This document shows positions 16,006 to 41,600 of a DNA stretch of 64,000 bases, one piece after another. Under the pieces are notes generated by a model. The model was not told the DNA's origin. It searched no databases and was given only the letters and a program-made list of their open reading frames with translations. The stretch's first letter is position 1. Each line of letters opens with the position of its first letter. The translations under genes and the position numbers were made by a program. The stretch comes from Oopsacas minuta (Eukaryota > Animalia > Porifera): the NCBI GenBank assembly GCA_024704765.1, contig JAKMXF010000210.1, forward strand, positions 1 to 64,000, read 5' to 3'.

Positions 16006-17393
16006 CAGTCTGTCAACTTGAAATTGGGAAGATCTTTTTCGATGTTAGAATGTTCCTAATTGCATTTTCAAATTGGTTATCGTAATAATATTGATAGTTT
16101 GTGTTTTTCAACTATTTCTAGTCATTTCTTAACCAACTGAACTTCTCTAGCTGACTGCGGTTACAAAATATTTCAATTTATACTTAGTTACTAATCAAAT
16201 ATTCTATATAAATATTTATCACTTGAATTTCTCGCAACACTTCTATTTCTTCGCTAATAATTCTTTACTTTCATCAATTCAAAACCTTAAAATGAACGAG
16301 CAAGAACAGCGTAACAATATCAAGATACTTTTCGACACAGGAATCACGAATTGTATGGAATTATCTCGAAGAACTGGAGTTCCAAAAAGTACAGTTTAAC
16401 GCACTGTTTACAAATTGAGGAATGCTGAATCCGTTGATAGAAAGATTGGTTCCGGGAAACAGCGTCAGATCAAAGCAAATAACGCTAGATCACTTGTTAG
16501 TTTGGCAATCAACAATCCTAGGTTATCTGTGAGGAAGTTGACTTGCAAATTTAACAAAAGGCGGGGTCTATTGTTCTCACACGAGGCTGTAAGGATTGAG
16601 ATGAAGCGGCGTGGCTTCACCCGCAAGGTTGCTAGAAAGATTCCGATGCTTACACAAATCCATAAGGCTTATCGTGTCGATTGGGCTAAGTCTAACAGAT
16701 GTAGAGATTGGGAGAAAGTGATATTTAGCGATGAGATGTCCATTTGGCTAGCTGGTGGCAGAGTATGTGTCTGGTGTAAAGGTGATTCGAAACCAGTAAA
16801 ACCCAGTACGAAACACTCTCCTAAATTGCATGTTTGGGGAGCGTTTTCAGCATGTGGAACGTTTCCTATCAAGGTTTTCAGAGAAAATCTCACCGGGAGA
16901 CTTTACTGCGACATTCTGCACGAATGTTTAGTAGAACAAGCAAGTGTCTTGTACCCTGATAGATGGGTTTTCCAGGAAGACAACGATCCCAAACACACGT
17001 GCAACCTTGCTAAAGGATACATGGAGGAGAAAGGGATACATAGGATGGATTGGCCTGCTTGTAGTCCGGATTTGAATCCGATCGAGAACCTCTGGCCGTG
17101 GATCAAGAGAGAAATCGATTTGAAGTCACCACGAAATTTAAATGAGCTGGAAAGGGAGCTAAATGAAGTATGGAATTCTTTAGAACATGAATTTTTACGT
17201 CCATTTTGGTCATCGATGCCAAAAAGAGTCAAATTAGTACGGAAAAGTAACGGAAATAAGATAAATTATTAGGCCTACTATATTATTATTGATTGTTTAA
17301 GGATTCTAATAACATATTTAGAATAGAAATACACTAAATGTACTTGTAGCTAGGGAAAAACAAAGATCTTCCCAATTTCAAGTTGACAGACTG
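16006..17393 (+). mobile_element. Complete Tc1/mariner (DD34E) DNA transposon, 1388 bp
   Basis: Perfect 32-bp TIRs CAGTCTGTCAACTTGAAATTGGGAAGATCTTT (16006-16037 and inverted 17362-17393), with TA duplication at 16004-16005 and 17394-17395. Confidence 0.97.
16292..17272 (+). pseudogene. Tc1 transposase (326 codons) with one premature stop in the HTH
   Basis: ATG 16292 MNEQEQRNN...SRRTGVPKSTV*RTVYKLRNAES, with TAA at 16397-16399 in frame with ORF 16415-17272. Catalytic IFSDE, FQEDNDPKH and SPDLNPIENLW, with 34 residues between the second D and the E. Confidence 0.92.
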
Positions 17394-17618: not shown

Positions 17619-20600
17619 ATGCGTTTATTCTTACTGACCTGTGTAATTGTTTTCTGCTTCATTCAACTTGGTAAGTTATATTTTGAAATACAATACAAAT
17701 AAATAAAAAACTTCATATTATCTCTTCCCCAGTTGGATCTCAAGTTCAAACTCTATGTCGCTTCAATAAAGAAAGTCTACCCTCTTTTCTGCAGGAGGGA
17801 GATGAGGCTGTATATGCAGTCGATCTACAAACCCAGCCCCCTACTGGTGTGAATGTTAGTATAATCCTAACTCCAATGGATAGTAGAGTTACTTTTAGAA
17901 CTGATAGTGTCCTTTCATTCAACGCTAGCAACTGGGACCAGAAACAAAGGTTCATATTATTCGGCGTGAATGACGATGATATTCTTGACAGTCCCTATCC
18001 TTCTCAAGTTTTGGTTGAATCTTATTCTAACTCTCTCAACTTCTCCACGTTTGAGGGAGGGACGTTCCCTAATGCTAATATAACACTCCTATTGCAGGAC
18101 TCTGATAGAGGTAGAGATTTCTCGTTTGAAAACGAATTATTATTTATTCATATTTTCAAGATTCTAGGATGATTTTAATAAATGGGGGTGGAAGAAAATC
18201 TAGAAATTTATAAGAGGTCCCGTTTATCCGGACCCCTATGGTACCTTCTTAATCGTATCCAATTATCCATCCCTGGCAATGCAGGTGGCTTCAGTAAAAA
18301 ATTAGAGTGAAATGATTGAATATCATTTTTTACTTCAAAAATTTTTATTCATCATCAGCCAATTTTCTGCACTTGTGGAAAATTATGAAATTATTTCTTC
18401 AATACCCAATTTATGGTTCTTTTAAATCATAATCACTAACTAGTCAGCTGTTGCTGTCTGACCACCTGTGCTCTGATAATTTAATATACTCTCTTATAGC
18501 TGGAGCTGATGTTACAATTGAAGATGATTCGGGCTCTTCTGCTATCCCAGAAGGTAGATTCTCAATATATCAGATACAGATACCTAGTATTCCCAGAGCT
18601 AATGTTACTCTACAGCTGTCTCCAGTACAACCAACAATATACCTGTCAGAATACACTTTCATTTTCCATGCTGGCAACTGGAATATTTCACAAGTTTGTA
18701 ATATCTTTATTTATGAATATTCTTGTGAATTATTAGCTTATTCTATATATTTTCTCTATTAGGCTTTTGCTGTATTCTCTGTGGACGATGAGGTTAACCA
18801 GGGCTTGACATTCCAGTCTAATATAAGCTTTACATTCACATCAGCTGATCCTTACTACTCAGGTCTAGTAGTAGATGAATTTCCTGTCCTGATAGAAGAT
18901 AATGATGAAGATAGTGCAGTGCTGACAGGTGTCATTACCTGGATACAATCAGATGACAGGTATTATTTAACCGTGTTCTAGTAATATACGTATATACAAT
19001 ATACTCCGCTAAGTACAGCTACTAGTTGACTGCTAGATTTCTCACTACCCCGTTGACGGACAGACGGACGTAGCACCTCATCCATACCATTAGGGCATCT
19101 CCCTATAGGAGCTGCACTAAAAATATCCGGTTCTACCTGCTTAATCGGGTCAATTTCCGGTCTCGATGTGACCCTATTAACCCTAAATCTACTATATCTT
19201 ATTAGATATGGAACAGAAATAACCCTATCACTCAGTCTAGACAGATATTACTTCCCATCAGCAACACAGGGTGATATAGTGTTACTAGAAGGAGCTAAGC
19301 TAGACTTTGGAGATGGATCTAGTATTGGTCCTAACATAGAGCTAAATGTTACTAAACTCTACTCTACCAATCTTCTAGCTAGTTTGACTATTTCTCAACG
19401 TTACAGCTCAGCATGTAATCTGGATGGTACTCCTTGGAGTATTCAATTCTCTTATTGTTGTAGAAGTAAGGATTTGATTGTTAATGGATTTACTACGTAA
19501 GTTTATCTGCGTTTATTCAGACTGTCTGTGGTTTAATTTGCCTATGATTCCAATAGGATAATACTTGAATCAGAAGTTAATCTAGCAGAACACAGTTCCT
19601 CTATGATCCCTCTATTCTCTCCTCTCTACGTCAGAAGTAATTCATCAACACTTCAGTACATGTATCTACCTGTAATTTCATCTAACGGACATCCTATGCA
19701 ATTCTCTCTTCCATTCTCACAGGCTTATATCTCATCTCAGGCTGGAGCTCCATCTTGGATTAAGATAGATGAAAACACTGGGCTAATTACATTTAATACT
19801 GCATATCTACCGGTTTCTACTGGATCAACTTGTTTCCTTGTTGATGTATTAGATGTAGTAGCTGATTTAAAGGTAAAATGATTTAACTATGCTAGTTAGT
19901 GTTACACATTAATTTACTAATCTCAAATATTATAGACTACTTTTCAACTCTGTCAACATATGATTAATGAGTATATACCGTCTCCTGTTCTGTTGAATTA
20001 TAACTTTACGAATGCTATCACAACTCCTAGAGTGTATTATGGAGTAGGAGAGACAGTAGAATTGGAGTTTGTAGTTACATCTCAGCTATCTCTTACTATT
20101 GAGCCGATTAATCCTCCAACTAGTGCTAACTATGCTAGTATTAATTCTAATACTCTATATACAGGTTAGTTTGTGTTCATTTTGTGAGATTATGTACATG
20201 AAGATGATACATAACGCTACATAACGCTACATATAATGCTTGAGTGGGTATCGCACTAACACCGTATGTTTCCACTTATTTATGATAGACTTGGCCCGTC
20301 ACTAATGATGGTTACATGAGCTTAATTATGGCTGTATTCTATTTAATATTTGATAATTATCACATATCTATTCAATCGTACAGTTGATTAGCTATTCATA
20401 CGTCTAATTTAAAACAATGCGCTGGAAATTTATATTAGTAATGAGTATGTATATTCTTTTCATGATCCTCCTTCTTCTACTGTACACCCTCGCTAATCCA
20501 AACAGTACTGTACCAATTGCAAAATAAATCTTTCTGATTAGTGTATTGCATTGAAACAATACTATAGGATCTAAGAATACATTTTTCGATATTGTACAAC

Positions 20601-23600
20601 GATGGAAAGGCTGCCAATAGTACAGTACATAATGGATATAGTGATATTTCTGTTTGTTGATTCTTGTCCCGTTTACAGTATAGCCCGTGTAAAATTTATT
20701 GGATATACTGATATTTGGCCACAATTATCCTCGCCCCCAGCGTTATCACTATAACTATTATATACTGTATTATTTATTTGTCCACAGTAGAATTAGCTAC
20801 AATTAAGTCTTTTTGAAACATTTACGACATTTTCCAAAGGCCCTGTTCGGAATAGTGAGGTCTAGCGCTGGTCTACTCACTCCCAATTTATCTAATAACT
20901 AGGTACTAATCAGAGATTTGCAATATTAACAGCGCCTAATGATATATTATTACAATAAATAATTGATAAGTATGCATAACTAGTATATTTTAATTCCGAT
21001 TTATTTATTAACCTTATAAGTAATACAAATATACCATTTCATCAATCATCCATTTGATTCACTTATCTCTGAGATGAATATACCTGGAAAGTTTGGGTTT
21101 CCCCTGCTGGGAGATCAGTCTATAAGCTTTGTTCAGGATCCAATTGGGTTTGTTAATAATCAAGTTAAACTATATGGACCTATCTTCAAAACACGTATTA
21201 TCAACAAACCATTCGTATTTGTAACTTCACAGAGTGGAGTGAGAGAAATTCTTGAAGAGAAATCTGACTGTTTTGAGAGAAATTATGAAGCTTTCCTTGC
21301 TGGACTATTTGAAATGAATATAGCGTTTGTAGATGGTCCAGCCTATACTCGTATACATGAACTGGTTAAACCTGGATTCTCTTCTGATATGCTTAGAAAA
21401 TATCGTGAGGATATTTCTCGTATCACTTTGCAGTTTCTTTCTGAGTTAGATTCATCAGCTCCATTCGATCTCTACCAAACTATGAAACAAGTAATTACAG
21501 AGATTTGTATCTTCCTATTCATTGGTATTGAGAGGAATGATCCCGTGTATCTTAGAACTAAGGAGCTATTGATTGAGCACTGGCATGGTTTGATATCAAT
21601 ACCTCTCCCTATTCGTGTTCCTCTCTTATTCTCATCTGGATACGATAAAGCTATGCTGGCTAAAGAACAACTTATATCTCTATTACGTCATCGATTGGCA
21701 GAACCCTGTGAATTGAGACGTGGTGTATTATCAGCTGTTGATGTGAGTATGTTTGAATCAGTGGATGAAGCTGCTAACAATTTCTTACTCTTCGTGACAG
21801 CTGTCATTCCTAAAGCTATTACCAGTCTCTTAGTTTCATGTTGTTTACAAATGTATTCACCGGAGAACAAACACATACTGGATGCATCCGGAGATGAGCG
21901 TTATTTTGATGCAGTGCTTAAAGAAGTACAGCGGTTGTTCCCTCCTTTCCTGGGTGGGTGGAGGAATGTGCGGGCTAACGTTGTGATTAATGGTTTTGAG
22001 ATTCCTAAAGACTATGGGGTAGTTTACATGGCTTATCATGTGCATCGTGATCCATTGATTTTCCCAGAAGCTGACAAGTTTATTCCAGAGCGTTGGTTGT
22101 GTGAAGAGACGAGAGAAGCAAAACTCTGGACATTTGGAGGTGGAGAGAGAACTTGTCTTGGTAAACACTTGTCCCAGATGATTATCTCTGAGTGTGTGGT
22201 TGCATTGAGAAATAATTTTGTATGTGAGATTGTCCCTGGACAGAATTTGACTTACAAATGGTTACCTGTATCCCGGCCTGTTAATGGAGTAATGGTAGCA
22301 ATGAAAAGATATATTAATATAGTTGACAGACCATTGATAACTAGTGAAAAAGTTAACTCAGAAAAAGATTGATTCTCACTTTTTCAGATATACTTTGTGC
22401 ACTCTTTCTTTAGTTTGCTACAAGAATTTATCCATTGCAGATTTGTGTGTTTTTGTAAAGTATAGAGGAATATATTTTGTAAGATGTAATCTTCTCTATT
22501 GCTTGAGTGAATATGAATTGTTTCAATTAAGTGCAGCAACAAACTTGTACTCTTTGATTAGCCCAAAATTAACAATCCTGAATTGAGTAATAAGGAATTA
22601 TTGGATTTACTACAAATACCATAGTTTCGTAGCAGGTACAATTGAATTAGTCAGGTTGCCCTATACTGTCTATGTTTCCCTTGGGAAATTGGTCCGATTG
22701 AATTTGACCAACCGGACCATCTCCTACGGCCATGTAATATGGTCATCAATTATATTTCTTGCCTGATAGATCTCTTAGATTTGTTATGATAATTCTATTA
22801 CTTAAATTCATATATATTGCCATATATTATATGTCTTCACTTAGCGTAATAGTACTGCTGGCTACTTAGTATAGGCTCTTAACTGTTTGGTAGTGCGCTG
22901 TTGATTAGTATTGTATTACTTGTAAGCCTCCTCAATTATTATTAGAGTTAATTAATCAATTTATGTTGACTCCTTTATTGGCTAAGAATAATATTAAAAT
23001 ACAAATAGATTATTCACACAAAAGTGCTGTAATTTATTGTCAATACTGAGTAGATTAAAATGGCACAAAAGGGGATTGAGGCAGGAAAACGCTACCCAGA
23101 TCTAGATGTATTCTCAATGCTAATCTTGGTTAAGGGTCCGAAGGGAGAGTTAGGAGGATTCACACCTCGCTTCTTTATACAGAAAATAACTGAGCGGTGT
23201 ATGTGTTGCTATGGTGTACCTCGTTCCCCTTATAGTGCTTCTTGTGGTCACAGCGTGTGTCGTACTTGTCTATTCAACTTTGTTTTGACTTCTCATAACC
23301 CTTCCTGCTTCATTTGTCAAACGCCAATGCTGAAAGAAGAGTGCTACCCAGATCTCCCGCTATCGCGACGGGTGAACCAGCTTGAGATCCGTTGTCCCTT
23401 TGTCGCTACTTGTGAATGGATGGGACTTGTTGAACATCTGAGAACTCATTTCAGTATTTGTGCAGGTGTAAACGGATTGTTTCGATCTTGGATGGAATCT
23501 ATACAGGCATTCTTATCCAACCTTCAAAATCGTAGTTCTTTGTTAGAGCGTCGTGTAGATCAGCTAGAGATGCAGATTAGGAAGCATCAAGGAATCTGTC

Positions 23601-26600
23601 AGCAGAGATATATTGAGCAGGATGGACGTTCTAAACATCTCACTGGACAGCTGATACACCTGAGAGAACAATGTCAGGTGCAGCCTAAAAATGCTGAAAT
23701 AGATCCAGAACTGGAAGATGGAATTCTGAAATCTAAAATACTCCTAGAAATATTCGCGGCTTTAGCGCTTGATATTCAGGAAGAAGAACAAAAAGCTGCT
23801 GAGGTACCAGAAATTCCACCTAGCCCTCCCCAACCAGCACATATAATACCTCCACCACAGCCACGACTAATTAGACGAGAGTCACTAGACACATGGAGAT
23901 GTCTCCATTGCTGTCTAGACAATCCCGTTGCCAATAAGATATGTCAAGTATGCTATAGAACACATGATGCTCAAGTTGGTCTAGAAGTAAATCGAATTTG
24001 CAATAATTGTAGATCTCCCAATAATTCGACAGACGTTGCCTGTAACAACTGCAACATTCCTTTGTAGCGTTATTATTTTATTTTTTGTTTGTAGTATAAA
24101 CGCTTTGTTCTAAAATAACTATTTACGTATTAAAATTATTTTTATTTGTTCCAAAGTGAAATAAAGTATTCTAATTTTTTAAATTCAAGTATTGAGTCCA
24201 ATCATTTATTCTGCTTAATTAATCTGGTTAAAATGGCATGATCCCGAAGTGTCCCTATTAAGCAGAGTATATGGTATACATTTACTAATTTATAGTACAA
24301 TGTTTAGAATAATTAATCTAATTCAATATGGAATTCGAAAATCATTTTCAAAAACAAATTCTCCGCAGAAAATAGTACAGATGGATCCTCCTATCTCACT
24401 TTCAAAGTCCAAAGTTCCTAAAATCACACTCGAGGACACTCTACATAACATGGGTATCAGACCTAAGCCACAACCTAAGAATCACACGTTTAAATTGCTG
24501 ATTGTGTATTTTGTAGCATTTCTATCCATGGTTTATTATGTCAGGGATATGGCGCCTAGCACAGAGAATGCATCTCGCATTTACATGGAGTTGGAAGAGG
24601 AAGCTAGAAGGAAGGCAGAAAAAGAAGAAAAGGATAATTCTTAGTTATAAAAGTGTTGCTCTGTTTATTCACTTATTAAATGTTCATCGGCTAATTTGAC
24701 AGTTTTGCATTTTATGATTGGAGATTACTACACCAACTTCGTCTCTCAGTTTTGAAATCGTTACCCATGTTTGTATACATGTTTGTGTAAGTAATTTATC
24801 CATAAGTTATATTAAGATATCTATTCTTTAGATTTGCTACTATTCCAATGGACACTGACGTCACAAGAAAGTGGAGAGTATCCTATTTGTTTCCACACCC
24901 TCCTTTCTGATCTTTATTCTTCTCTCCCATACTGTGTTATTATATCAGTATTGGAGGTGCCAGGAAGAAAGGTGAATATATAAGGCCATAATATATTATA
25001 TATCGGCGGTATGATTCCTTATAAGGCACTAAATCAAAGAGTATATGATATCTATTTATCAATACATATCTACCTAGGTCCCAGCTGTCCAGTTGGTCCA
25101 ATCTCTCAACTACACAAGCGGTTATGACAGTGAAGTCACGTTACCCTCTCTCGCCCTCTCAGGAGAGCTAAGTACAGCGGAGCATGCGTTTGTAATGATT
25201 GGAGGGAAGATTGATGCAGGAGAGAGTTTATCTTTTACGAGTGGAGCTCTAAATACACTTGATGTAAAGTCAATTAGTTCTTCTCTCCTTCTTATTACTG
25301 GAGAAGATTCTCTATCTGTGTATTCTCAGGCGCTTGCTAGTGTTAGTTATAGGAACGAGGAGCAGAGATCAACTAGTGGCACAAGGTAACCATATTAGAT
25401 ATTTCGATATTGTACAAGTATTTTATGTATTATGTAGCTGTTTATTTGGCCATTTGAAGCTTACTTTTCGATACTTTACCCTTTTTGGCGAATCAGTTTA
25501 ACATTTTTAATCTAAGTCTTTGAATAAAGACGTATTACGTATAATACGTATTATACGTTCCATCTAGAATTTTGGGTGACGTAACTTCTATTAGGCTGAT
25601 TTCTGCAATAAATATTTTGCATCAAAACAGTAGTTATCGAATTATTAATGAGAAATCTCAGCATAGTTGACCAAATTATATAATACTTGATAATAATGGA
25701 CTATACAAGTCTAACAATGTTCAAATCTTGTATTTCTAGACGTATAATCGTTAAAATAGATCACGTATAACGTATTATTAGGGCCGTAGCCACTGGTCAG
25801 GTTGGTCAAGTTAGCATGGTCAATCAGTCAGGTTGGTTAGGTTAACCTGACCACTTTTATTTTGGTGGCTACGGCCCTGAATTATACGTTTAACACATAT
25901 TATACAACTTAGTTTTGAATATTTAAATTCTAAATAACACTTTTCTTTTAAATTTCTTTGATTCTTATAATTTTCTGAAAGTATCTAAAACTTCTTTGCT
26001 TTTTTGACCCATTATACGTGTTCTGAGCACGACTAAGACATATTTGTTCGTTCCGCTCCAGCTGATATATTATTGATTATATTCTAACATTTATATACTT
26101 CCTCACACATTCTTACTATTATTCTCAGATATCTGATATTTGGTATTTTTGATGGAACCTACTTGAACAACCTGGCTCTTCAATATTTCAGATTAACAGT
26201 GAGCATTCTTAACAAGCCTCCTACTATTTCTCTCAGTGGAGATACTCTCCCTTATGAACAAAGATTTGTAGCTAATCCTATTTATATTTCTCACAACACA
26301 CAATCTACTCTCTCTGATCCTGATTCAGTCGGCATACATAATGCTACGATAAGCATCTCTCCTCTGTTGGATTTTGGGGTTGAGACCCTGACGAGTAGCT
26401 TCACATCTCCGGGACTTGTTTCTATGCCAATAATAGTACAAGAGATCGCTATAGATATCCCATTTGGCTATTCTCAATCAGGAGAATTACATTCTCACAT
26501 AACACACAATTTGTACGTGAATGATTCAAGCAGTTTAACTGTTGGAGACTTAGATATTGTAGTGTATATAGACCATTCATGGATAGGAGACATCACACTT

Positions 26601-29600
26601 GAGTTAGAACATGATGGTTTAAGACGTACTCTTGTAACACAGCCTGGAGGAGCACTGTGTTCACAAGATAATTTGTTCCATGTAGTGTTTGATGAAGAGG
26701 CTGACGTCTCGTTAGGTAAGACCAGTTCTTCACCTGGGGTGTGTGCATTCAGGTCACAAGGAGTGTATCAGCCTGAAGAAAGTTTAACTGCCTTTTCAGG
26801 ATCTAATATCAACGGAGTATGGACACTCCATGTAATCGATGATGTACCAGCTACACACAATGGTAAGCTAGTAGGATGGGGTATTGTAATACAACCTGAG
26901 GAAAATGTATTCATATCTACTCCTCACTCAATTATTCCTCCACTCTTATTGACTCGTATTCTATCTCCTTACCAATCTGTATCACTCAATATCAACAGTC
27001 CTGGTCGTATCATAAACTTGATCCCTCGTATACAAATATCCCAGCCTTATGAGAGGGGTCTACTGTACCTCCCTCAATTGGTCCTGACACATCCAGACGG
27101 TACACAGGTACAGCTGAGTGATGAGACATATCTCCCATGTATTAACGGTAACTATACGTATATTGTATTCAGTGATACAGCAGCTTTCACTGTGTATAGT
27201 CAATGTGTTTCTACCAATACAACTAATAGCTCTATTACACCTGATATACCTGTATCAAATAGTAAAGATACAATGATAGATATGTTAAGACCTGTCACTA
27301 GTCTGTCAACACTGGTAGGTAGGCGATCAGGAGGGGAATGGTTACTCACTGCTTGGGTGTCACGTGACACTCGAATACACTTGTTAGGATGGTCAATGTA
27401 TATTTCCACAGAGCCAAATATTGATACTAATTATGATACGTTAACTGGTGTATTCACATTGGCAGGATTTGATTCTACAGAAAACTATCTAACCATTTTA
27501 CGTAGCATTCAATACAATAATACATCTCCTTCTCCTACTTTCTGGATAGGCAGAACAGTAGAAACTCTGTTATTTGATGGAGAGACAAATTCTTTAGCTA
27601 TTCCATCATCTCGTACGAATATTGTACTACATCATATTGTTATAGATCTAGACCCGTTTAATGTTACCACAGCACTGCATCCTGGTTATAGCACTAGTTT
27701 CATAGAGCATTCTGTTTCTACACCTATCGTAGATTCAGGCGTTCTGTTAAGAGACGGATATTTGTCTGTTGGATTATATCGCTTAGAGTTTGTAGTTGAT
27801 ATTCAGAATGATATGAATGAGTTTATATCTGTTCGAATATCAAACTCTACTAATATACTCACTACATCAAATTACGATTTATCTAGAAATGAGTATCTTC
27901 TCTCTGTGTATAATCAAGCAGTGCTATATCCCATCTCTGTATTTCAAACTATACTCAGGTCTGCTACGTATTCTAATACAGCTGATGAGTTGATTGGTAC
28001 AAACCGTACTGTTACTATTAGAATATATGAGACTAGTACTGGCATAGCTTATCCCAGTCTAGAGGCTAGCACATATATTGAACTCGTGCATACAAATGAT
28101 GCACCAGTTTTAATACTCAACTCTGAATTCGGAGCATTTGGAGATATCTCTAATTTCGTTAGTTACACAGAAGGTCAGGGTACTCTCCAGCTAGCTAAAG
28201 CAGATACTATAATACTCTATGATAATGATCATGGAAATTTACAACAGATTGTTATAATCATAACCAATCCGATTGATCTCTTACATGAGAGTCTGTTAAT
28301 CAACGAATCATTACCCAATGGTGTTAATTCTACGTATAATACAGATACATATACTCTGATTATTCACGGTAATGCTAGTATTGATAACTATATATTGGCT
28401 ATTAGCCTTATAAGGTATCAACATCTATTGCATCCAGGGCGACCTGATACTACACCTAGATTGATATCTTTCACACCCTTTGACGGACACAGATACGGCA
28501 TTACGACAAATGCATATGTCTCGTTTGCATCAGTTAATGATCCTCCGTTGATTATTGGAAATGTATACACAACATCGTTCAGAGAAGAGATGGATCCAGT
28601 TCCTATCATATTTGAGGGTACTAAACTATTTGATATTGATAACGATTCACTTCAATACATAGAGATTAGTATTATAAATCGTATAGACGGTGCTAATGAG
28701 TTTATCTATGTAAATCCAGCAACCACGACAGAGACAATATCCAATAATGAAATCCAATACATTACCTACACTCCAACACTAACTTACCCTTATAATGATA
28801 ATGCTACGGTGATTATAACTGGATTGAAAACTATAGCAGAATATGAGTTAGTATTACATACAGCTAGATACGATAATACAGCTGATGAGCCTCAGATTGA
28901 TACAAGGAATATTTCTATTGCTATATCAGATGGATTAGATATAACTTATGGGAATACTTTAGTAATGATTGTACTAGTTAATGATTCCCCGAGATTAGCT
29001 CAAGGTACCATACCTTTTGTCGCATATGGTAACGAGGATCAGATTGACCTAGGAATTTCAGTATTTGAAACTAGCTATCTATTTGAGGATGATGATCTTG
29101 GAGATGATAAAGGTATTGGCATCATATATGCAGATTGTGATCATGGGAGATGGCAGGTGAGAGGTAGTATGTTAAACTGTGATCATACTGTTACTAATAC
29201 CTCAGTGAATGGCTCTAGTAGCTGTGCATTGGATTGGCTGGATATACCTTGTAATCTCACTGTTGATAATTCATTCTTAATTAGATTTAAAGCAAATACA
29301 AGACTGAGATTTATTCCTGACCTTAATTTCTATGGTAATTCGTCTGTAACGGTAGTTGCATGGGATGGGACAGATGAGCAAGTTGATGTTCTGATTAAAA
29401 GCGCAGTATCAACTTCTGAAATTGACGCGTTTAGTCCTGAACAGACAACTTTAACATTTATAATTCTACCAATTAACGATGCACCAGTTCTTATACCAAT
29501 ACCTCTGGTTATGCCTTCTATGCAAGAAGATGATTTTTCATCAGTCGGTGTGTCAGTATCAACATTAGTTATTAACGCTTCTGACGTAGATAGTGATTCT

Positions 29601-32600
29601 ATCGGGATTGCTATCATATTTGTAGATAATACTAATGGAGTATGGCAGTATAAATTAAATACCAATAATATCTGGAATAATATCTCTATTGTTCATGAGG
29701 GAGAAGCTCTTTTGCTTGATCCAGATTCTCGTATTCGATTCAAACCTATCTTAAACTTCCATGGTAGCACTGTACTATCTTTCAAAGCTTGGGATTTGGA
29801 TCAAGGCTTAACCTCTGGTTCAATAGCATCTACTCTATCTACAGAGTTCTCTATAGATAATACTACTGTCTCGTTAACAATAGAACCTGTTAATGATTCT
29901 CCCATCTTATTATCAGCTGATTTCCAAATAGAGGCTCTGTATGAAGATATAGCTAATTCTCTTAACGATGGTTCTACAATTAGTGATATTATTAACGTCT
30001 ATTATAGTGATATTGACAGTGTACTTAATGTAAACAGTACAGATTTTGGATTAGCAGTGATTTGGGTAGACAACACGTTTGGAGTTTGGCAGTACTCCTG
30101 TAATACCAGTGGATTCAGTTGGAATAATTTCATTGGAGATTTTCAATATGGAAGTATATTTCCTGAACTTCCGTTGGCAGACAAATCAACTCTTCTTCTA
30201 TCTCACTGTAGAATTAGATTTATACCTGAATCTTACTTTAACACGGAACTTGACTTACAAGACCAAACACGTCCCATTTCAGATCGTCCCTCTATTCTTG
30301 TGAGAGGTTGGGACAATACTGGCCTCACTCAAGGGAGATCTGCTACTTATGGGAACGATGCTTCATATGCTACTTTATCCAATACTAATGAATATAGTAC
30401 GACGTCACTATACATATCCGTTAGTATTACATCTAGAAACAATATTCCTATACTACATCTAACTAATGCTACAACACAAACACACGTCACTACATTTATA
30501 GAGGATTTATCTGGAGTAAGGATAGTCAGCGATGACGTACATCTAGTGGATTATGACAATGATAAGCTAGAGTCTCTTACAGTAACTATAATATCAGGAA
30601 GTAGTAATGATTTCCTAAACAATAGCTCTTACTGTCAAGGAATTGATGTTAGAAGAGAATATATCCAATACAATCTTATTGATACTGATCTAGAAGTTGG
30701 TAGCATGTCTTTATGTCCTTATCAACTTGTATTCAAACCTAAATCCACACATCCTGATACTTCTGTACATATTGCACAATATACCAGAGTGTTAAAAACT
30801 CTAATATTCAATAACGATCTAGAAGAACCATCTCCAGGTGATCGGGTTATAGAGTTTATTGTAACAGACAGATATTCTACAAGTATTTCAAGCTATACTT
30901 TTGTGTCAGTTGAATTGGTTAATGATGCTCCCATACTCGATCTAAACAGACATTTATCTGATCTCCATAATAGAGTTTCTTTTGTAGAAGGAGAGGGACC
31001 TCTATTACTAACTAACATTTCTAATATAAATCTCTTTGATTATGATAGTCGTAATCTAACCTCAGCTATCATATCTCTCATCCCTAGTCCAAACATGCAG
31101 CACGAAGTTCTAAGCGCTACAACAACTGGTACAAACATATTAGCATACTATAACTATACTACAGCTATTCTAACACTAACAGGATCTGATTATATTGAGA
31201 AATACGAGATCGTCCTAGCATCTATTACGTATAACAATACTAACACTGATGACCCTAATCAGACAGAACGTCAGGTTATGTATACAGTCAGTGACGGAGA
31301 TAAGGACAGTATACTGGCTATTAGTTATGTGTCATTTAGAGGCATTAACAACCATCCATCTCTAGATGTGAATGGAGATAGCAAAGGTCTTGATTTTGCT
31401 ACTGTATTTAGAGAGGAAATGGGTCCGGTTAGTATCGTCGATTCGAATTTATCCTTACTTGACGTTGACAATGACACACTAGCATATGTCAGTGTTAGGA
31501 TCGTGAATCCGCTTGATGGTGATAGTGAATTCCTAACGGTTGATAACGTAACTATGGTGGAAGCTATTAGTAGCAATCAGTTGGGTATTCCTAAAATCCT
31601 AAAAACTACAGTATTAATAGCTAATACTACATTTAATACTAGCAACCATGAGTTGATTATTTCAGGACTTGATTCAGTTGAGGAATTTGGATTAATTCTA
31701 ACAACTCTACAGTACAATAACATTAAGAATGAAATTAATACTGAAGTGAGGGTTTTATACTTCTATGCTAGTGATGGTTTGTTGTCAAGTGCTTTGGCTC
31801 GGACTAATATAGCGTTAGAACGTGTTAATGATTCTCCTTATTTCATTTCATCTAGCGTATTGATATTCCCACAAATTGGAGAAGATGACATTAATTCTAG
31901 CGGGTTCTCAATAATACAACTAGTAACTGGACTTATCAACGATTCTGACGTCACAGATCCTAGAGGTATAGCTGTAATTGCTGCTGAGTTTGACTATGGT
32001 ATTTGGCAGTATCGTTTGGATAATTCCTCAAATTGGCTTAATATTAACTTTAACGTTAGTCTCTATGATGCTCTGTTGCTATCAGCTGATTCGGATAATT
32101 ACATTAGATTTGTGCCTGAGGATAATTTCAATGGAAATGTAACAATCTCGTTTGTAGCTTGGGATTCATCTGAAGGCGGATATGTTGACGGGAATAGGAG
32201 ATCAGCTCATCAAATTCCTAGATCTGATATTAATGCATTTAGTTTTGAATCAAGAACTCTAACACTTGAAGTTCTCCCAATAAACGATTCACCAGTAGTA
32301 CAATCTCTAACTGAAATACTGATGCCATCTATCCTTGAAGATGAGTATGCTTATGGAGTAACTATTCCATTTCTAACAACAGTGCTGGACTCAGATGTAG
32401 ATAATGTTATGTTTGGCATTGCTATTATTCAGACAGACAGTATAAATGGAGAATGGCAATACTCCATGAATAACGGTTCTAGCTGGGTAACTATCACAGG
32501 TGTCACTGAATCAACTGCACTTGTATTTAGAGGTAATTCCAATGAGAGAATCAGATTTATGCCTGAACTGAATTATAACGGTCCATCCGAATTCACTTAT

Positions 32601-35600
32601 AAGTTATGGGATCTAACCACCCCCGAATTAAGCGGTACTCCTAATATCAATACATTGACTGATCCTGTAATAGGACCCTATAGCATAAACACAGCTACAG
32701 CTACAGTCATAATAGAGGCAGTCAATGATTCACCATTGATAACACCTAGATTAATTTTATCTCCAATCAATGAAAATATAGATACGTCTATTAATGTCGG
32801 TATTCCAGTCAGTACTGTTATAGATCAGCATTTCTCTGACGTAGATAATAACTTTCAATCTGGACTTGCTGTTGTTGGGGTTGATCACAGGTATGGAGAA
32901 TTTGAGTATTCCTGTGTGACAACTGGTACATTTTGGCGCCCGTTTCTAGGAGATATAGCTTATGGTGAAATTGCCCCTAGACTGCCATTCCCGTCGAAAG
33001 CAACTCTACTATCTGACAGCTGTAGAATCAGGTTTAGACCTAATACAGATTTTAATACTCAATTTGACTTGGAGGGTGTTAGTTGGGCAGAAGATATAGT
33101 GCCCTATCTCTCTGTGAAGGCTTGGGATCAAACTAGTGGGATAGCAGGGGATTATGGGGTGGATACTACTTCTAATCCTGATGATATCACCAACTCATTC
33201 TCAGCTAACACTGTTAATATTACCATAACAGTGATTTCAGTTAATAGACCACCTGTTATATACTTACAAACAGCTGATAATTCATTTCAAACATTCTTTA
33301 CAGAACCTTCACCTCCACTCCGTACTGTTTATCCTTCTTATCTAGTCGATACAGATTCTGTTTCCATTACAGACTCAGATCACATACATCTACAATTACT
33401 TAGGGTTACGTTAACTAGACTTGATGGTTTCTCAGAAACTATTCTCTATGACTTGTCTATGACAAATCTAAATGCTTCAGTCTTAGCGGATGATGTAAAT
33501 ACTTTCACTATTGAATTTAGCTCTTCTGACACACAATATCCAGCACTACTGAGTTACTATGTAATGCTATTGAAATCTCTACGTTACCAGAATATTATTG
33601 AAGAACCGGAAGCCACAGACCGTACAATCTCATTTCTATTGGTAGACCCAGAATCTAGTTCAAGCTCAGCTCTTACAACTATTTTCATACAGCTTGTTAA
33701 TGATCCACCTGAATTGGATTTAGATAACACAACTGCGAATCTTAACTCTTATGTATCTTACACTGAAGGGCAAGGAGAGTTTTTCTTCCTCAATTCCAGT
33801 AGACTATCTCTTATAGACTATGATTCCAACTATCTTCAAAATGCTACGATCACTCTCTTGAACCCTATAGACGGTGTTTACGAGGTTCTACGAGCTACAA
33901 GCACACTGAATATTAACGTAACCTATTCTAATCATAGACTAGTGTTAACGGGCCCTGCCCCTGTAGCAGAGTTCATTAGTGTATTACTCACAACATCATA
34001 TGAGCATACTAACAGTAGTCCTGGCAACCCTAACACTAAGACTCGGCAGGTGTTATTCTCAGTGGCAGATGACAGTGACAGGAGTATATCAGCTGTCACT
34101 TACATATCATTTAGTTCAGAAAATGATGCGCCTATACTGGATCTCAATGGAAATCAACCCGGAGAGGATTATAGTACAGTATTCTATGAGCAACAAGGCT
34201 CTATCCGTATCCTATCAGCTGACAGATTGCTGCTTATGGATATTGATAATTCCACTCTTGAAAAGATTACTGTTAAACTGTTCAGCCCAACAGCTGATGA
34301 CTTTCTCTTTGTAGACAATGTTACTCTGTATAGTGATAACCCTAAAATAGCGAAAATTGTAATACTTACTAATCTACGTTCTAGACAGCAATTCAACGTA
34401 TCTACTGGGGAATTAGTTATAACAGGACTAGATTATGTACACGAATATGAAACAGTATTGAAAACACTACGTTATGATAATTCAGCTGACGAGACTGGTA
34501 GCTTTGTTAAGACATTGTCAGTTATTGCAAGTGATGGTCTTCTCGACTCAAACGAAGCCTTCATTTATATCAATGTTACTCCAGTCAACGACGCTCCTAC
34601 CATTAATCTGAATATTTCTGTGATCAGGACTGTGATAGAAGAAGACATACTAGATAGTATTAATATTGGTGTCTCCATTTCTAGCATAATAGACCCTATC
34701 TTCAGTGATGTGGATTCTGTCACACAACCTGGTTTAGCTATCGTAGCCGCTGATACCAGTATTGGGTATTGGGAGTATATAGTGATACCCAATAATATAT
34801 TAAGCAATTCTTCTAATTCATCGATTCCCTTTACTGTCCCTTCAAATTCTACTTGGATTCAATTCCCTACAGTAGTTAGTCCTGAGTATGTTCTTCTATT
34901 GAAAGCTGATGGTGAGTATACTCGAGTTAGATTCGTGCCAGGAAATGATTACAACGGAGGAACTAGTATTTCATTTGTTGCATGGGATGGTTCTGACTCG
35001 TTCTCTTCAGGGCAGATAGTGTCATTGACTAATTCTGATCCACAGACTGGTGCATTCAGTACTGAGGATACTCTAATGTTTATTGATATAACACCAGTTA
35101 ATGATGCCCCTGTTCTCGAAACTATTCCATCTCCAACATTTTCTATTAGAGAAGGTGAGTATAATTCATTCGGGATATCAGTGTTTGAGTTAGTGAGTCG
35201 TGTTACAGATGTAGATACTAATAGTCAACAGGAATTTGGTTTAGCTGTGGTTATGAATGATAACTCAAATGGAACATGGGAGTACACTACTACAGGAGGT
35301 ATAGACTGGGACATAGTTGAATCTACAACTCCATCCATTGCGCTATTACTAAGTTCTACTCATGATGGGTATAGGATAAGATTTGTTCCTGATTTGAATT
35401 TCTATGGTGAGAGGGAATTGAGTTATCTAGCCTGGGATCTAACTTCTGGTGGTGAGTCTGGTACTTATGCTTCCACCATCAGATCTGATCCAATAACTAG
35501 CCCATTCAGTTCTTCAGTTGCTACGCTAATTCTCACAATTGAGTCTGTCAATGATTCACCTTATTTTGATGGCAACAGCTTGCTAGATATCGTCATAGAA

Positions 35601-38600
35601 GATATGATAAATTTTGGTACTGCTGTTTCTGATATTGTGAGAGATTCATTTAGAGATATTGATGACGGATACCAAGTAGGCATAGCGGTAACTAACGTAG
35701 ACAATCGTTACGGTAAATGGGAGTGGCGATGTGATGATTTGCAGGATTGGCAGGATTTCATTGGAGACATTGTATTTGGAGTCCGTACACCATTCTATCC
35801 AATTCCTCTACGAGCTACTCTATTAGCTGGAGAGTGTACCATCCGATTCCTTCCTAACCTTAACTTTAATACAGAAAAGTACACCACTGGTCTACCACGT
35901 CCCTCAAATGACTTGCCATACATCTCAATACTAGCTTGGGATCTGACAACTGGAATATCCGGTACATACGGGGTAGACACTACATACCATAATTCTAGTG
36001 ACACGAATGAGTTCAGTCATTTCCCTTCTACTGCATACATCCATGTGATGTCAGTTAACGATCTTCCATCAGTACAGATATCTCAACAGGGAGTAACCTA
36101 TAGTACTATATTCAGAGAAGATGGTGGTATTGTAGCTATCGTAGAGCCAGCACAGGTATTTATAACTGATGCAGATCATAGCACGTTAGAATCAATAGAG
36201 ATTATTCTAGAACAAGTCTATGATGACGGCTATGAGAATATCTCATTGAGTCCAAACCCAGGAGTAGTTAAGATTGGAGATGAGGTATATGTTAATACAA
36301 CTGTCAATAATACGGAGAGATTAATTGTCACCTCAGGACAAATTGGTGATGTTTATCAATTTGTCCTCTCTAACCCAAATCCCTGGGAGAGAGGATCAGT
36401 TGCCGCCTACCAAACTGTAATACGTACTTTAGTTTATAATAATTATAATTCTGAACCGACTAATATGACAAGATTTATCAGATTCTATGTATCTGACGGG
36501 GAAGAAGTGAATAGCTATGCTTTAACTACCATATATGTAGAATTGATTGTTGAAAATATTCCAGTATTAAATTTGGGAATTTCTCAAATTACACTTACAG
36601 AAGATTTTATAGAATCTCGATCTATTGTATCCCAGAACCTGACTCTCACTGATATTGATCATAATGAATTCTTTTACATTATTTCCGCCAATATTTTCTT
36701 CGATCAAACACCAGAATCAATCCTTGAATATATTTCTATATCTTTGCCTTATACACCATGTAACATGAACAACAATACATTTTCTCCTAATATGAATCAG
36801 TCTAATTGTACTACATCTCCTCTAATATCTAGTTACGACCCAATACAAGGTAGGATTTCTATTAATGGACCTGCTTCCCTTGACGTGTACAGAGACACCT
36901 TGAAAACTGTTGTATACACGAACAGGATTGGTGAGCCGATTGATTTGGAGAAGATTATTATTTTCGAGGTTTTCGATACTAACAACTTAAAAAGCGATCC
37001 CGTATCTGTTCGTATTACAATTGAATTACGCAATGATCAGCCTCCTATCCTCACAGCTGGTGGCCTATATCAATACATTGAGCAGCAGCCTACTAATGCT
37101 TACTCCTTGTTTATTGGTGATAACATAACATACACAGATGCGGACAGTGGAAATGAACAACAGTACAGTGTAAGTATATCAATTACCAATCCTAGTGATG
37201 TCCCATATGAAATTCTATCTGCTAATCCTCCTTCAGCTAGCATAACAGTAGAGTATCATACACTAGATGTGATATACATGACAACTCAATTGGTGGAGAT
37301 ATGTACTAATGTTACTGACAATTCTACTACATCAACTGTGATAGATACTACTGGTAACACTACTACTCCTAGTAATATAACTACAAATATGATTGGGAAT
37401 AATACTAATACAACATCCTCTCCAACTACGCTACCTATTACCCCAGCACCTGTAGTGTTAAGATGTGAGAATGTGAGTGGGACTGTAAACATGACTAACA
37501 AAACAACAATATACACAGGACTTAATTTAGTAGGCCCTGCTTATATTTCAGAATTCTTAGAAGCTCTAACTACAGTAACGTATAGTAATGGAGCAGAAGA
37601 ACCTACTCCCACACCCAGAAGGGTGACCTTCCAGGCTAATGACATGAATCTGACTAGCAACCAAGCAGAGATTACTATCAGAATTTTGCTTACAAATGAT
37701 CTCCCTGTTGTTGATTTGAATGGGTTTATGATAGGAACACGTTTCATGGTTACGTTTGAAGAAGGTTCAGAACCTGTTCCTATTGTAGATTCATTGTCTA
37801 TGAGTATTTCTGATAACGATCATACAGGCTTAATTGGTGCTACAATTACTCTAAATACGATATATGATAAAGATATGGAAATATTATCTGTAAATACATT
37901 AGGGAGTAACTTGCTAGCTAACTACAACATGACTACTGGTATTCTATCTATTAGTGGTAATGCTAGTATTGAGACTTATCAGTCTGTTTTAAGAACTCTG
38001 ACTTATGTGAATCTAGATGCAGGACCTGGTGCTCCTAACCCACACATGAGAGAGATTACTGTCATTGTCTCAGACCCTGTAGACAGCTCAGTTCCTGCTT
38101 ACAGTGTCGTGACCTTCTTGTCTGTTAACGACCCTCCTTTCCTGGATCTGAATGGTAACTTGATAGGTGAGAATGCTACTGCTAATTTTATAGAGGAGGG
38201 AGAGAGAGTTAGAGTATTTTCTCCTGATGCTGTTATCATGGATGTAGACAATGGAACTCTTGCTAGTTTAGATATCTCAATTAACAATCCAGTTGATGGA
38301 GAATCAGAACGTATATTTATAAATCCAGATATTTACACATTGCTTAACCCCATGGGATCTATTCAGATTACAAACCATTCTATTGTATTGACAAACTTCC
38401 TTTCTACTAACAAATACATTATGGCTCTACAGAGCATATACTATGTGAATACATTGGATGAGCCTTCGTATGATACACGTTATGTCAGTGTAGTAGCTTC
38501 AGATGGTCTGTTGACTAATGCATTGAGTTATGTTGGTAGTATCACGATTCAACCTGTTAACGATCTTCCTCAATTCAGTTTCAATGCAGACCCAAATTCA

Positions 38601-41600
38601 TACGCTACATTCGAGGTTGTATACCAAGAGGATACAAACTCTATTCCTGTTGTTAATGTTGTGAGTACAGATTTCATTTTGATAGATGATGATGATCCTT
38701 TTCTGACAAGAATTATTATAGAGAGAAGTCCTGCGCCCGATGGAGATTATGAAAAGTTATTTTTCTTATCTTCAAATCCTATTCCTGGTCTCGGACACAC
38801 ATATCCACAGTGTCCTCTCCAATCGATTAGCAACCCACTCACTCTAGACATAACGGTATCTCTCACGTTAGAGGAATGGAGAACTGCACTCAGCACATTG
38901 AGTTATTGTAACATGGACCCCAACTCATTCGGTGGAGTACGTCAGGTTAAGATTGTGTTAGTAGACAGCAAGGGTGGTAGATCAGCTGTTCGCTACTCTA
39001 ATATAAACGTAATACCTATAAACGATCCCCCTCTGTTCACTGGTACTCCTCCTCTCGTTACGACAGATGAAGACAATTCTGTACAAATACAAGTATTGAG
39101 TAATTTCACTGATTATGAAGAAGTACTTACAGGTACTGCTATAGAAATAGTTACACAACCAGCTCGAGGTATTGTACAGGTTATCCAGCCTAGTGGGGTA
39201 ATACAGTATACTCCTGCATTGAATGATAATGGTATTGTAACGTTACAGTTTAGAGCATGTGATTCAGAAGCTAACTGTTCTCTGCCTATTACAGCTACTA
39301 TTATGATAACACCTATAAATGATCCTCCTACACCTGTTGGTAGTAATTTAATAGCAGTTGAAGAGGATGGAGAAGTACAAGTTAACCTACTGGACTATTT
39401 CACCGATGTTGAAGACACGCCAACTACTAATAACACTCGTGTTGTTGTGACACCTAGAGGGGGTAATTGGGAGTACAACATGGAGCAGGAAATATTTTTT
39501 TATTCTCCTAATCTGAACAGAATTGTAGATGATTCACTTGAATTTGAAGGTTGTGATAATGATGGATTGTGCATCAATATCACTCTCACTTTCAAAATTA
39601 CTCCGATTAATGATCTACCAATTATTACTATTAACTATCCAAACTTTATCTTTCCGGCAATGACAAATGAAGATACTCCTGTCAATATAAGTGTATCTAT
39701 TGAGGATGTAGAGGATAATGATGAGCTTGAAATACAAGTATTATCTGTAGAGAATGGAGGAGTTCGTGTATTCACATTATCTACAGTGATTCAACAAACT
39801 AACGTGTTTTTACAACTGATACACGTAGAGTATACACCTAATTCAAACTTCTATGGAGATGAAAGTATTGTGTTCTCTGCAACAGATAACGAGGGTGGAG
39901 TGAGTACACAAACTTTATTAATGAGGGTAATGTATATTAATGACCCTCCTACTATAGAGAATACTGTCATAACACTTGATGAGGATACAGCAATAGATTT
40001 GACTCTACCACAAGGACTCGGTATTTCTGATAGTGAATCTGTAATTACGTCACAGCAGATTGAGCTACTAACTGACCCAGACACTGTATTAGGAGATCTC
40101 TCATATAACAGTGATAATGGAATCCTATCTTACTCCCCATTGCCTAACTTCCATACAGATTCTATTGATTTTACTATTAGAGTTTGTGATACAGATACCG
40201 TAGATGAAATTCAGTGCTCAGAATTTGATATTACCATAATGATTAATTCAATTAATGATCCTCCTATTTTCATACCTTTCATCTTCTTCATTCGTGAAGA
40301 TTCATCAAACACTACTAATATACTTCCATACCTCAGAGATGTTGAAGATGTTACCTTGTCACCAGCTCGAATTAGCCTTACAGGACCTGCGCCATTCTTT
40401 GGAACAGCTGATTACAATACGGATACTGGTGATGTCATGTACACACCCGGTGATGATTTCTTTGGACAAGATTTCATCGATTTGAGGGTTTGTGACAGCA
40501 ACAATTTATGTAGCTCTATTCAACTAGAAGTATATGTTATTGGTGTGAATGACGCGCCTATGGCCGATGGACTTAGACATTTTAGTCCAGAGGATAGAAT
40601 AGATCTTGTTAATATTGCCACTATTGTAAGAGATGTTGATACGATACAGGACGTTCAGGCTATCCAATTGAGGATATCTATTGTAGAGATTGTTGATGGT
40701 AACATTACGCTAGTTGACGAGGGAGTTACAAATAAGAGTGGGGATATTCGAGTGTTCCAAGATGAAGGAGTTATATCTTACGAACCTCCGCCCAATTTCA
40801 TTGGTTATGACAAGTTTAAATTTGCAGTGTGTGATCACTGTGATGAGTCTAGAAATCCTGAATTAGGACGTACAACTCTAGAAGATATAGAGTGTCTTAA
40901 CCAAATAGAAGAGAATAATGGACAGAGTATTGATCCTCTTACAGGCTTGAGTATAGCCTGTTCTGTTGGTACTATTACTATTGTTGTTGTGAATAATAAT
41001 GATGTTCCTTTGTTGAGAGATATTTCTGCTGTCACAAACATAAACGAAGAAGTAGTTCTTGATCCTTTCGGGTCACAACTACTCTTCGATGATATGGATT
41101 TATTCGTATATGATGAAGACGATAGTCAAGCTGCGTATGCTCTATCTCAAGGATTTGATTTGAATGAACTTGTTCTATCCAATAGCAGCAATATCGATAC
41201 AGGAGTAATTGGAATACTGAGCTCGCCTATAGGAGGGAATGCAGTAATCTCAGGCACAGATAGAGTCTACATGACATACACCCCATTCAATAACTTTATA
41301 GGTTATGACGAATTCTTGTATGAAGTATGTGATATCTCTCCTATATCAGCATGTGGTAATGCTATCGCTAGGGTATTCGTGTCTAGTTCAGGGCCTCATA
41401 TCGATATGCTAGTTGTCTCTGGTTCTCAAGATCTCCCTGACTCTAAAGTATCAAGGGGAGACACGATAACAATTTCATTCTCTGAGCCTACTAATCAACC
41501 TCCTCAAGAAGGGAAAGATAGCATGGAAAAATTCTGCGGATCAGCTGTTGATCAAGTTATTACCTTCGACTCCCCCTTTATAGACTCTACAATATTCCCT

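Follow-up and report, generated by a model that had tools for sequence, protein, structure and literature searches.

Several small genes lodged together in one intron of a large host gene have precedents elsewhere. Intron 27b of human NF1, a large host, contains three small protein-coding genes (EVI2A, EVI2B and OMG), but these lie on the opposite strand, whereas the guests that we describe in the sponge Oopsacas minuta (Hexactinellida) lie on the strand of their host. At the cholinergic locus, the gene for VAChT is an intronless, same-strand guest in the first intron of ChAT, and has been conserved there over long evolutionary distances. ChAT and VAChT are functionally linked, however, with common upstream exons and promoters, and the host and guests in O. 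minuta have neither an evident link nor a shared exon. The spliced-leader operons of nematodes and tunicates resemble the O. minuta nest in consisting of close, same-strand genes in a lineage that possesses a spliced leader, since spliced-leader trans-splicing is reported from glass sponges; they differ from it in that no conserved trans-splice acceptor was found at its guests, one guest has an apparent promoter motif, and the guests are intronic and not arranged in tandem.

The closest parallels come from glass sponges themselves. The genome of Aphrocallistes vastus (Francis et al. 2023) contains 2,432 nested genes, or 12.4% of all genes, many of them conserved (PMC10282587); among human nested genes, about 37% lie on the host strand and 63% opposite (PMC3192792). 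Like the locus considered here, nested genes in A. vastus are single-exon, intronic, conserved between glass sponges and mishandled by automatic annotation, and the O. minuta annotation is known to miss nested genes (PMC10282587). The present locus is apparently not described in that paper, which gives no strand breakdown (PMC10282587), and it differs from the A. vastus cases in having three guests in one intron, all on the host strand, within a host of about 6,600 codons. The earlier note on this DNA had presented the arrangement as unusual; for glass sponges, whose published genomes are rich in nested genes (PMC10282587), this is not supported, and the nest reveals no new kind of genome organisation. 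It instead adds a deeply conserved and well-documented example of an intron with three same-strand guests, and is for that reason a convenient place to study how a host is transcribed through sense-oriented genes in a compact genome.

Our window, the whole stretch of 64,000 nucleotides at the start of contig JAKMXF010000210.1 (assembly GCA_024704765.1), very probably contains an old and conserved nest, in which the seventh intron of an 11-exon host gene (17619-44194) houses a same-strand trio of unrelated genes that lack introns (Table 1). The host reading frame runs on the forward strand from an ATG at 17619 to a stop codon at 44194; GT-AG borders and compatible phases are found at all 11 coding exons, the summed length of which is divisible by three. 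The coding length of 19,875 nt, equal to 6,625 codons, was obtained by adding up the exons, and the searches were run with each exon separately and not with a joined sequence. The predicted product is a giant type I membrane protein. It would open with a signal peptide and a SibA-like N-terminal region that includes Ig-like domains, continue through a proprotein-convertase P-domain and dozens of cadherin-like repeats, and finish with a single transmembrane helix followed by a proline-rich tail. The signal peptide is encoded by exon 1 only, and a counterpart of this exon, short, hydrophobic and with identical donor and phase, is present in four of the five related assemblies (L001, L003, L004 and L005).

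Table 1. Predicted exons of the host gene, its seventh intron and the three guest genes (positions are those of the window; a slash marks a splice border; P0014 is an uninterrupted metagenome homologue)
Feature	Position	Strand	Description
Host exon 1	17619..17670	+	ATG and signal peptide MRLFLLTCVIVFCFIQL; donor G/GTAAGT, phase 1
Host exon 2	17733..18110	+	corresponds to P0014 residues 361-465; 61-73% identity in related loci
Host exon 3	18500..18693	+	corresponds to P0014 residues 483-532
Host exon 4	18763..18959	+	corresponds to P0014 residues 536-597
Host exon 5	19206..19496	+	SIBA-E_N-like (Pfam PF24907, E 9.5e-4, under the family cut-off); corresponds to P0014 residues 605-693
Host exon 6	19557..19872	+	He_PIG-like Ig domain, weak match; corresponds to P0014 residues 701-802
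Host exon 7	19936..20164	+	donor G/GTTAGT, phase 1; 76 residues; dN/dS 0.10-0.26
Host intron 7	20165..24831	+	4,667 bp, phase 1; contains the three guest genes
Guest 1	21074..22372	+	intronless CYP120-like cytochrome P450, 432 aa
Guest 2	23060..24067	+	intronless; RING, TRAF-like zinc finger, coiled coil, two RanBP2-type zinc fingers; 335 aa
Guest 3	24300..24644	+	intronless small single-pass membrane protein, CCSMST1 family, 114 aa
Host exon 8	24832..24971	+	acceptor TTCTTTAG/; enters in phase 1, leaves in phase 0
Host exon 9	25078..25385	+	corresponds to P0014 residues 1012-1045; also in public model P0001
Host exon 10	26129..43313	+	giant exon, 17,185 bp: P-domain, cadherin-like/Big_9 repeats, transmembrane helix; corresponds to P0014 from residue 1050
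Host exon 11	43610..44194	+	cytoplasmic tail and stop codon; agrees with the C-terminus of P0001

The borders of intron 7 are those that the earlier note had proposed. Exon 7 ends in ...TAT ACA G/GTTAGT, the acceptor of exon 8 reads TTCTTTAG as claimed, and, both sides being in phase 1, the split codon would be G/AT, encoding Asp. Our independent model also counts seven coding exons from the ATG up to this donor, in agreement with the original numbering, and the three complete forward-strand reading frames were found inside the interval as described. We infer a splice junction from 20164 to 24832, which would place the guest reading frames entirely between neighbouring coding exons of a single host gene. 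Exact-protein look-ups, a word search and a full profile search returned no transcript-derived sequence for the locus. The further suggestion of a single Ig-like domain, divided between exons 7 and 8 by the intron, is plausible, but a profile-profile comparison of the two exons with the He_PIG-like exon 6 gave no match.

That the exons on either side of the guests belong to one polypeptide is supported by homologues that are not interrupted, namely three metagenome reading frames (P0014, P0017 and P0024) and one Saccoglossus protein (P0027). Their matches to the upstream exons are followed by matches to exon 8, then to exon 9 and then to the giant exon; the exon 6 profile matches all four proteins, and exon 8 matches residues 888-919 of P0014, 886-919 of P0017, 1475-1509 of P0024 and 440-476 of P0027. 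At the place of exon 7 the homologues have a gap of 80-85 residues; in P0014 the distance between the matches to exons 6 and 8 is 85 residues, which fits the 76 residues of exon 7, and the spacing in the other three is as in P0014. For exon 7 itself no match was detectable in these homologues, and its placement there is by spacing only. A word search with exon 7 found no match, and when its alignment was used in a full profile search, the five proteins returned were all repetitive and scored through many weak repeats; we rejected them as unrelated, none of them having an exon 6 or exon 8 profile match. No paralogue of exon 6 was found in the sponge's own genome, nor any relative in a metagenome scan with the exon 6 profile.

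Synteny in related sponges, which the earlier note had proposed as a check, bears the arrangement out. In five related sponge assemblies (L001-L005), in which the loci were found via their P450 orthologues, exons 2 to 7, the P450, the RING gene, the small membrane gene and exons 8, 9 and 10 follow one another in this order, all on the forward strand. The corresponding introns range from 3,680 to 11,883 bp and contain the same trio of guests, and in six of six genomes the donor G/GTTWGY and the acceptor YTTTAG/ occupy one codon position and phase. In four relatives the P450 starts about 260-380 nt past the exon 7 donor, and the small gene stops about 120-190 nt ahead of the exon 8 acceptor. Synonymous divergence (dS) among the six genomes ranges from 0.85 up to saturation, and the intergenic DNA of the intron can no longer be aligned; dN/dS across all pieces is 0.06-0.48, indicating purifying selection. 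Borders, phase and guests shared with five other assemblies, together with this selection, amount to more than chance. In a 2.2-kb Logan contig (L006) carrying a more distant P450, no exon 7-like reading frame was present in the 880 nt upstream, and we draw nothing from this contig.

The guests themselves are intact genes under purifying selection and not pseudogenes, each reading frame being complete in all six genomes. The first scores 124 bits against Pfam p450 (PF00067; cut-off 22.8) and contains both the heme motif FGGGERTCLG (FxxGxRxCxG) and an ExxR motif, EVQR; its closest named relatives carry the label 'putative cytochrome P450 120', and its orthologues occupy the identical position with 69-78% identity and dN/dS of 0.06-0.14. 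The second scores 14.7 bits against the C3HC4 RING finger (PF00097), under the cut-off of 21, with Cys/His metal ligands that are invariant in six of six orthologues (dN/dS 0.18-0.25), and its two C-terminal CxxC...CxxC fingers were assigned to the RanBP2 pattern by visual inspection only. The window's copy of the third scores 12.5 bits against CCSMST1 (PF15013; cut-off 26.1); four of the six orthologues match this family, with a best E value of 7.6e-6, and dN/dS is 0.14-0.48. Exact-protein look-ups found no record for any of the three. No terminal repeats were found flanking the trio, which therefore carries no sign of recent insertion as a block. Poly(A) hexamers follow the guests at about the rate expected by chance in such AT-rich DNA, as estimated from base composition, and we draw nothing from them. 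A motif, TATAGGCTY, lies upstream of some guests and is not general in the window.

In proposing how such a nest is expressed, we suggest that transcription of the host pre-mRNA would continue across the three guests, that splicing from 20164 to 24832 would then allow a secreted, membrane-anchored product, and that the guests would be made as separate mRNAs. For the RING gene at least, this would probably be from its own promoter; a TATA-like block lies 60-90 nt upstream of its start codon and is kept in four to five genomes amid DNA that is otherwise scrambled, a conservation that suggests promoter function. This would be the ordinary way in which nested genes work, and is common in glass sponges. 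Given that trans-splicing occurs in this group, the exon 8 acceptor could also take a leader, producing 5'-truncated transcripts.

Three other histories of the interval have to be weighed against this. A misassembly that placed unrelated DNA between exons 7 and 8, named in the earlier note as a possible source of error, found no supporting evidence and is refuted by the occurrence of the same gene order in six independent assemblies. Alternatively, the insertion of the trio might have split an ancient gene, such that exons 1-7 now encode a short secreted protein and exons 8-11 are separate, being expressed, for example, from a leader trans-spliced onto the exon 8 acceptor. Trans-splicing has been reported in glass sponges, and read-through past exon 7 meets a stop after a single codon in the window, L002 and L003. 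We nonetheless consider such a fission highly improbable. The stop is not conserved, falling after 1, 23, 1, 1, 14 and 20 codons in the six genomes, and this variation implies that exon 7 is not a conserved terminal exon; its donor is maintained in all six, in the phase of the exon 8 acceptor, despite saturated synonymous sites. In none of the six does exon 8 have an in-frame ATG upstream, and it would therefore be unable to start a protein; a product started in exon 9 would lack a signal peptide and yet end in a transmembrane anchor. The earlier note had allowed for a separate signal-peptide exon serving the giant exon, but the only signal peptide is that of exon 1. The structural part of that note's reading is thus upheld by collinear homologues, by splice sites and phase in six genomes, by the missing start codon of exon 8 and by the position of the signal peptide.

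The earlier note had offered termination/splicing competition, mutually exclusive expression or polycistronic processing as candidate mechanisms. A third possibility, of the polycistronic kind, is that the guests have no promoters of their own and are released from the host's primary transcript through spliced-leader trans-splicing and polyadenylation, in which case a single transcription unit would yield host and guests as alternative products. The four genes share one strand and are tightly spaced, AG dinucleotides occur 0-40 nt ahead of the guest start codons, and a trans-spliced leader exists in glass sponges; still, we regard this as very improbable. The AG sites vary between the six genomes, both in where they lie and in their type, leaving no conserved acceptor ahead of the guest starts, and the TATA-like block points to a promoter at the RING gene, so that the available checks do not appear to favour it. 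Were the P450, RING and CCSMST1 genes nevertheless a conserved 'operon inside an intron', drawn in this manner from transcripts of the host promoter, which we doubt strongly, each transcript would yield either a giant adhesion-like protein or three small ones, a built-in switch older than the divergence of these glass sponges. Ordinary nesting is the reading that we retain.

Since nested genes were already known to be common in glass sponges, the main practical result concerns the public annotation, in which exon 7 is not joined to exon 8. Public model LOD99_2290 (6,399 aa; UniRef name 'RanBP-type and C3HC4-type zinc finger-containing protein') instead joins the RING reading frame to exon 8 onward via an intermediate exon. 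This link is what would favour the RING gene as the true first exon of the giant gene, but that structure is almost certainly wrong. What serves as the intermediate exon is a piece of the small gene translated out of frame, whereas all six genomes conserve the frame of the small gene itself; the RING reading frame is conserved beyond the donor used in the model, through its second RanBP2 finger to its own stop; and the model has no signal peptide and omits exons 1-7, which the homologues place on the same polypeptide. Frame, stop and homologues all contradict LOD99_2290 as a gene structure, and the model is a chimera, combining the RING gene with an out-of-frame stretch of the small gene and with exon 8 and those after it. 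The error is of the same kind as one illustrated at the glassin locus, where the O. minuta annotation treats a gene that is nested in A. vastus as the first exon of a different gene (PMC10282587). The value of the present analysis lies mainly in this correction: the RING protein and the small CCSMST1-like protein are products of separate genes, and the true giant protein would begin with the signal peptide and SibA-like N-terminal region whose coding sequence lies 5-7 kb upstream of exon 8.

The + strand genes of this AT-rich window (~36% G+C) are densely packed, and three complete intronless ones lie between exons 7 and 8 (e7 and e8) of a gene for a giant cell-surface protein, as an earlier note had proposed from the sequence alone. 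That e7 ends ACAG|GTTAGT at 20164 and that e8 begins at 24832, both in phase 1, can be read directly in the sequence; the codon split by this intron reads G|AT. From our reading of the flanks, the host gene consists of eleven coding exons. Every intron between them is bounded by GT-AG, and the phases agree from exon to exon. The summed exon lengths come to 19,875 nt, or exactly 6,625 codons, a figure that is arithmetic on exon lengths and not a joined sequence; homology searches for the host were likewise run exon by exon.

Coordinates of the host exons, the guest genes and associated features (window positions unless L002 is stated)
Feature	Position	Strand	Remarks
e1	17619-17670	+	ATG and signal peptide
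e2	17733-18110	+	
e3	18500-18693	+	
e4	18763-18959	+	
e5	19206-19496	+	
e6	19557-19872	+	
e7	19936-20164	+	3' end ...TAT ACA G|GTTAGT
P450 guest	21074-22372	+	complete ORF, Pfam 124 bits
Two conserved blocks 5' of RING gene	22870-23000		also in L001, L004, L005; surrounding DNA scrambled
RING/zinc-finger guest	23060-24067	+	complete ORF
Small membrane-protein guest	24300-24644	+	complete ORF
e8	24832-24971	+	preceded by acceptor TTCTTTAG|
e9	25078-25385	+	
Palindromic element, host intron 9	25780-25878		
e10	26129-43313	+	giant exon
e11	43610-44194	+	stop codon at end
Transposase ORF	16415-17272		
Zwilch homologue	13969-15792		
ENTH-domain gene	8767-9382		
MatE transporter gene	L002: 2777-4306	+	
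MatE transporter gene	L002: 5635-7170	-	

The earlier note held that e7 and e8 flank an intron of one gene, and four lines of evidence (collinearity, synteny, splice sites and translation logic) indicate that e1 to e7 and e8 to e11 do indeed belong together. In P0014, an uninterrupted homologue of 7,607 aa encoded by a metagenome ORF, the matches follow exon order: e2 at 361-465, e3 at 483-532, e4 at 536-597, e5 at 605-693, e6 at 701-802, e8 at 888-919, e9 at 1012-1045 and e10 from 1050. The order of the upstream exons, e8, e9 and the giant exon is preserved in two further metagenome ORFs (P0017 and P0024), and the e6 and e8 profiles match an annotated Saccoglossus protein (P0027) ~80 residues apart. 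e7 itself is too diverged to find a match in the uninterrupted homologues and only the spacing fits, the 80-85 residues between e6 and e8 being the size of e7 (76 residues). Five related sponge assemblies, located via their P450 orthologues, all carry e2-e7, the P450, the RING gene, the small gene, e8, e9 and e10 in this order on a single strand; since six independent assemblies thus agree, the misassembly that the earlier note had wanted checked is excluded. In all six genomes the donor of e7 (G|GTTAGT, G|GTTTGT or G|GTTAGC) and the acceptor of e8 (a pyrimidine tract and TTTAG|) keep identical codon positions and phases, at evolutionary distances where synonymous sites approach or exceed saturation (dS 0.85 to not computable) and the intergenic DNA inside the nest is unalignable among the related loci. 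No in-frame ATG lies upstream of e8 in any of the six genomes, and the host protein, whose C-terminal part comprises a transmembrane helix and a cytoplasmic tail, therefore needs a signal peptide; its only one is in e1, an exon conserved in the four relatives with loci extending that far. Read-through beyond the e7 donor meets a stop after 1, 23, 1, 1, 14 and 20 codons in the six genomes, so that e7 does not qualify as a conserved final exon.

The start of the giant ORF is 100% identical to the database entry 'hypothetical protein LOD99_2290 [Oopsacas minuta]' (P0001, 6,399 aa), which places the window in the glass sponge Oopsacas minuta. This public gene model is a chimera of four pieces: the RING ORF as far as '...THDAQ', a 45-codon exon (24517-24651) that is the small gene in the wrong frame, e8, entered via the acceptor at 24832, and e9 to e11. 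It lacks a signal peptide and leaves out e1-e7. Beyond its break the RING ORF stays conserved through the second finger to its own stop, and the conserved reading frame at the small gene is that gene's own, not that of P0001. The model also misses 23 residues of the giant exon ('HG' runs straight into 'RPDTT', against HGNASIDNY...HLLHPGRPDTT in the ORF); because these fit the repeat pattern of the protein, the small intron predicted there is probably spurious.

None of the three guests is disrupted in any of the six genomes, and purifying selection acts on each: dN/dS is 0.06-0.14 (P450), 0.18-0.25 (RING gene) and 0.14-0.48 (small gene). The P450 has no N-terminal membrane anchor, and its nearest named relatives, from corals, molluscs and fishes, are labelled 'putative cytochrome P450 120'. 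Its I-helix region reads FLLFVTAVIPKAITS, with no evident instance of the usual acid-threonine pair (A/G-G-x-D/E-T); taken together with the absent anchor, this may be a sign of atypical reaction chemistry. The RING protein, whose RING ligands are invariant, also carries a TRAF-like finger and a coiled coil, and at its C-terminus two fingers that by eye fit the RanBP2 type; its Pfam scores fall under the cut-offs. Judged by profile matches in four of the six orthologues (best E 7.6e-6; the window's own copy is under the cut-off), the small protein probably belongs to the CCSMST1 family.

The layout and age of the nest, and selection on every part of it, are established. As for expression, host transcription would pass through the three sense-oriented guests, the host pre-mRNA would be spliced from 20164 to 24832, and the guests would be produced as separate mRNAs. 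A TATA-like block (GAAGTATAATATTA) precedes the RING start codon by ~60-90 nt and persists in four to five genomes, which suggests that this gene has its own promoter; a second conserved non-coding block (TATAGGCTCTGT) lies ~190 nt upstream of the gene. A similar CTATAGGCTTGT occurs upstream of the P450 in L001, L004 and L005. Acceptor-like AGs are found 0-40 nt before the guest start codons, at positions not conserved across genomes, and the frequency of poly(A) hexamers is close to that expected by chance, as we estimate from base composition. The mechanisms that the earlier note put forward (termination/splicing competition, mutually exclusive expression or polycistronic processing) are hypotheses for this locus. 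A trans-spliced leader has been reported (PMC10282587).

We hold, from these comparisons, that the nested arrangement is old. The orthologous intron of one relative (L002) measures 11.9 kb and additionally houses two inversely oriented MatE transporter genes whose proteins are 90% identical, so the intron kept acquiring genes. A Zwilch homologue and an ENTH-domain gene neighbour the nest upstream, an order shared by L001, L004 and L005, and microsynteny therefore reaches well outside the nest; it is high among glass sponges (PMC10282587). The nest had been regarded as unusual, a view we do not share: it is a further instance of the gene nesting for which glass sponge genomes are already known from the literature and, as ~63% of human nested genes lie on the opposite strand, same-strand nests are a minority and not rare (PMC3192792). 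Only 83 nested genes are counted in the O. minuta annotation, which is attributed to the annotation method in the same study that shows a nested gene annotated in this species as the first exon of another (PMC10282587). The main value of the locus lies in its corrected gene models.

Some 350 bp upstream of the host start codon is a Tc1/mariner-type transposase ORF with DDE_3 and HTH_Tnp_Tc3_2 domains and without an ATG start; none of the five related loci has an equivalent. Host intron 9 holds a palindromic element of ~100 bp whose 14-nt terminal inverted repeats (AGGGCCGTAGCCAC / GTGGCTACGGCCCT) are perfect. Because at least 25 other places in the genome match it, the element looks like a MITE.
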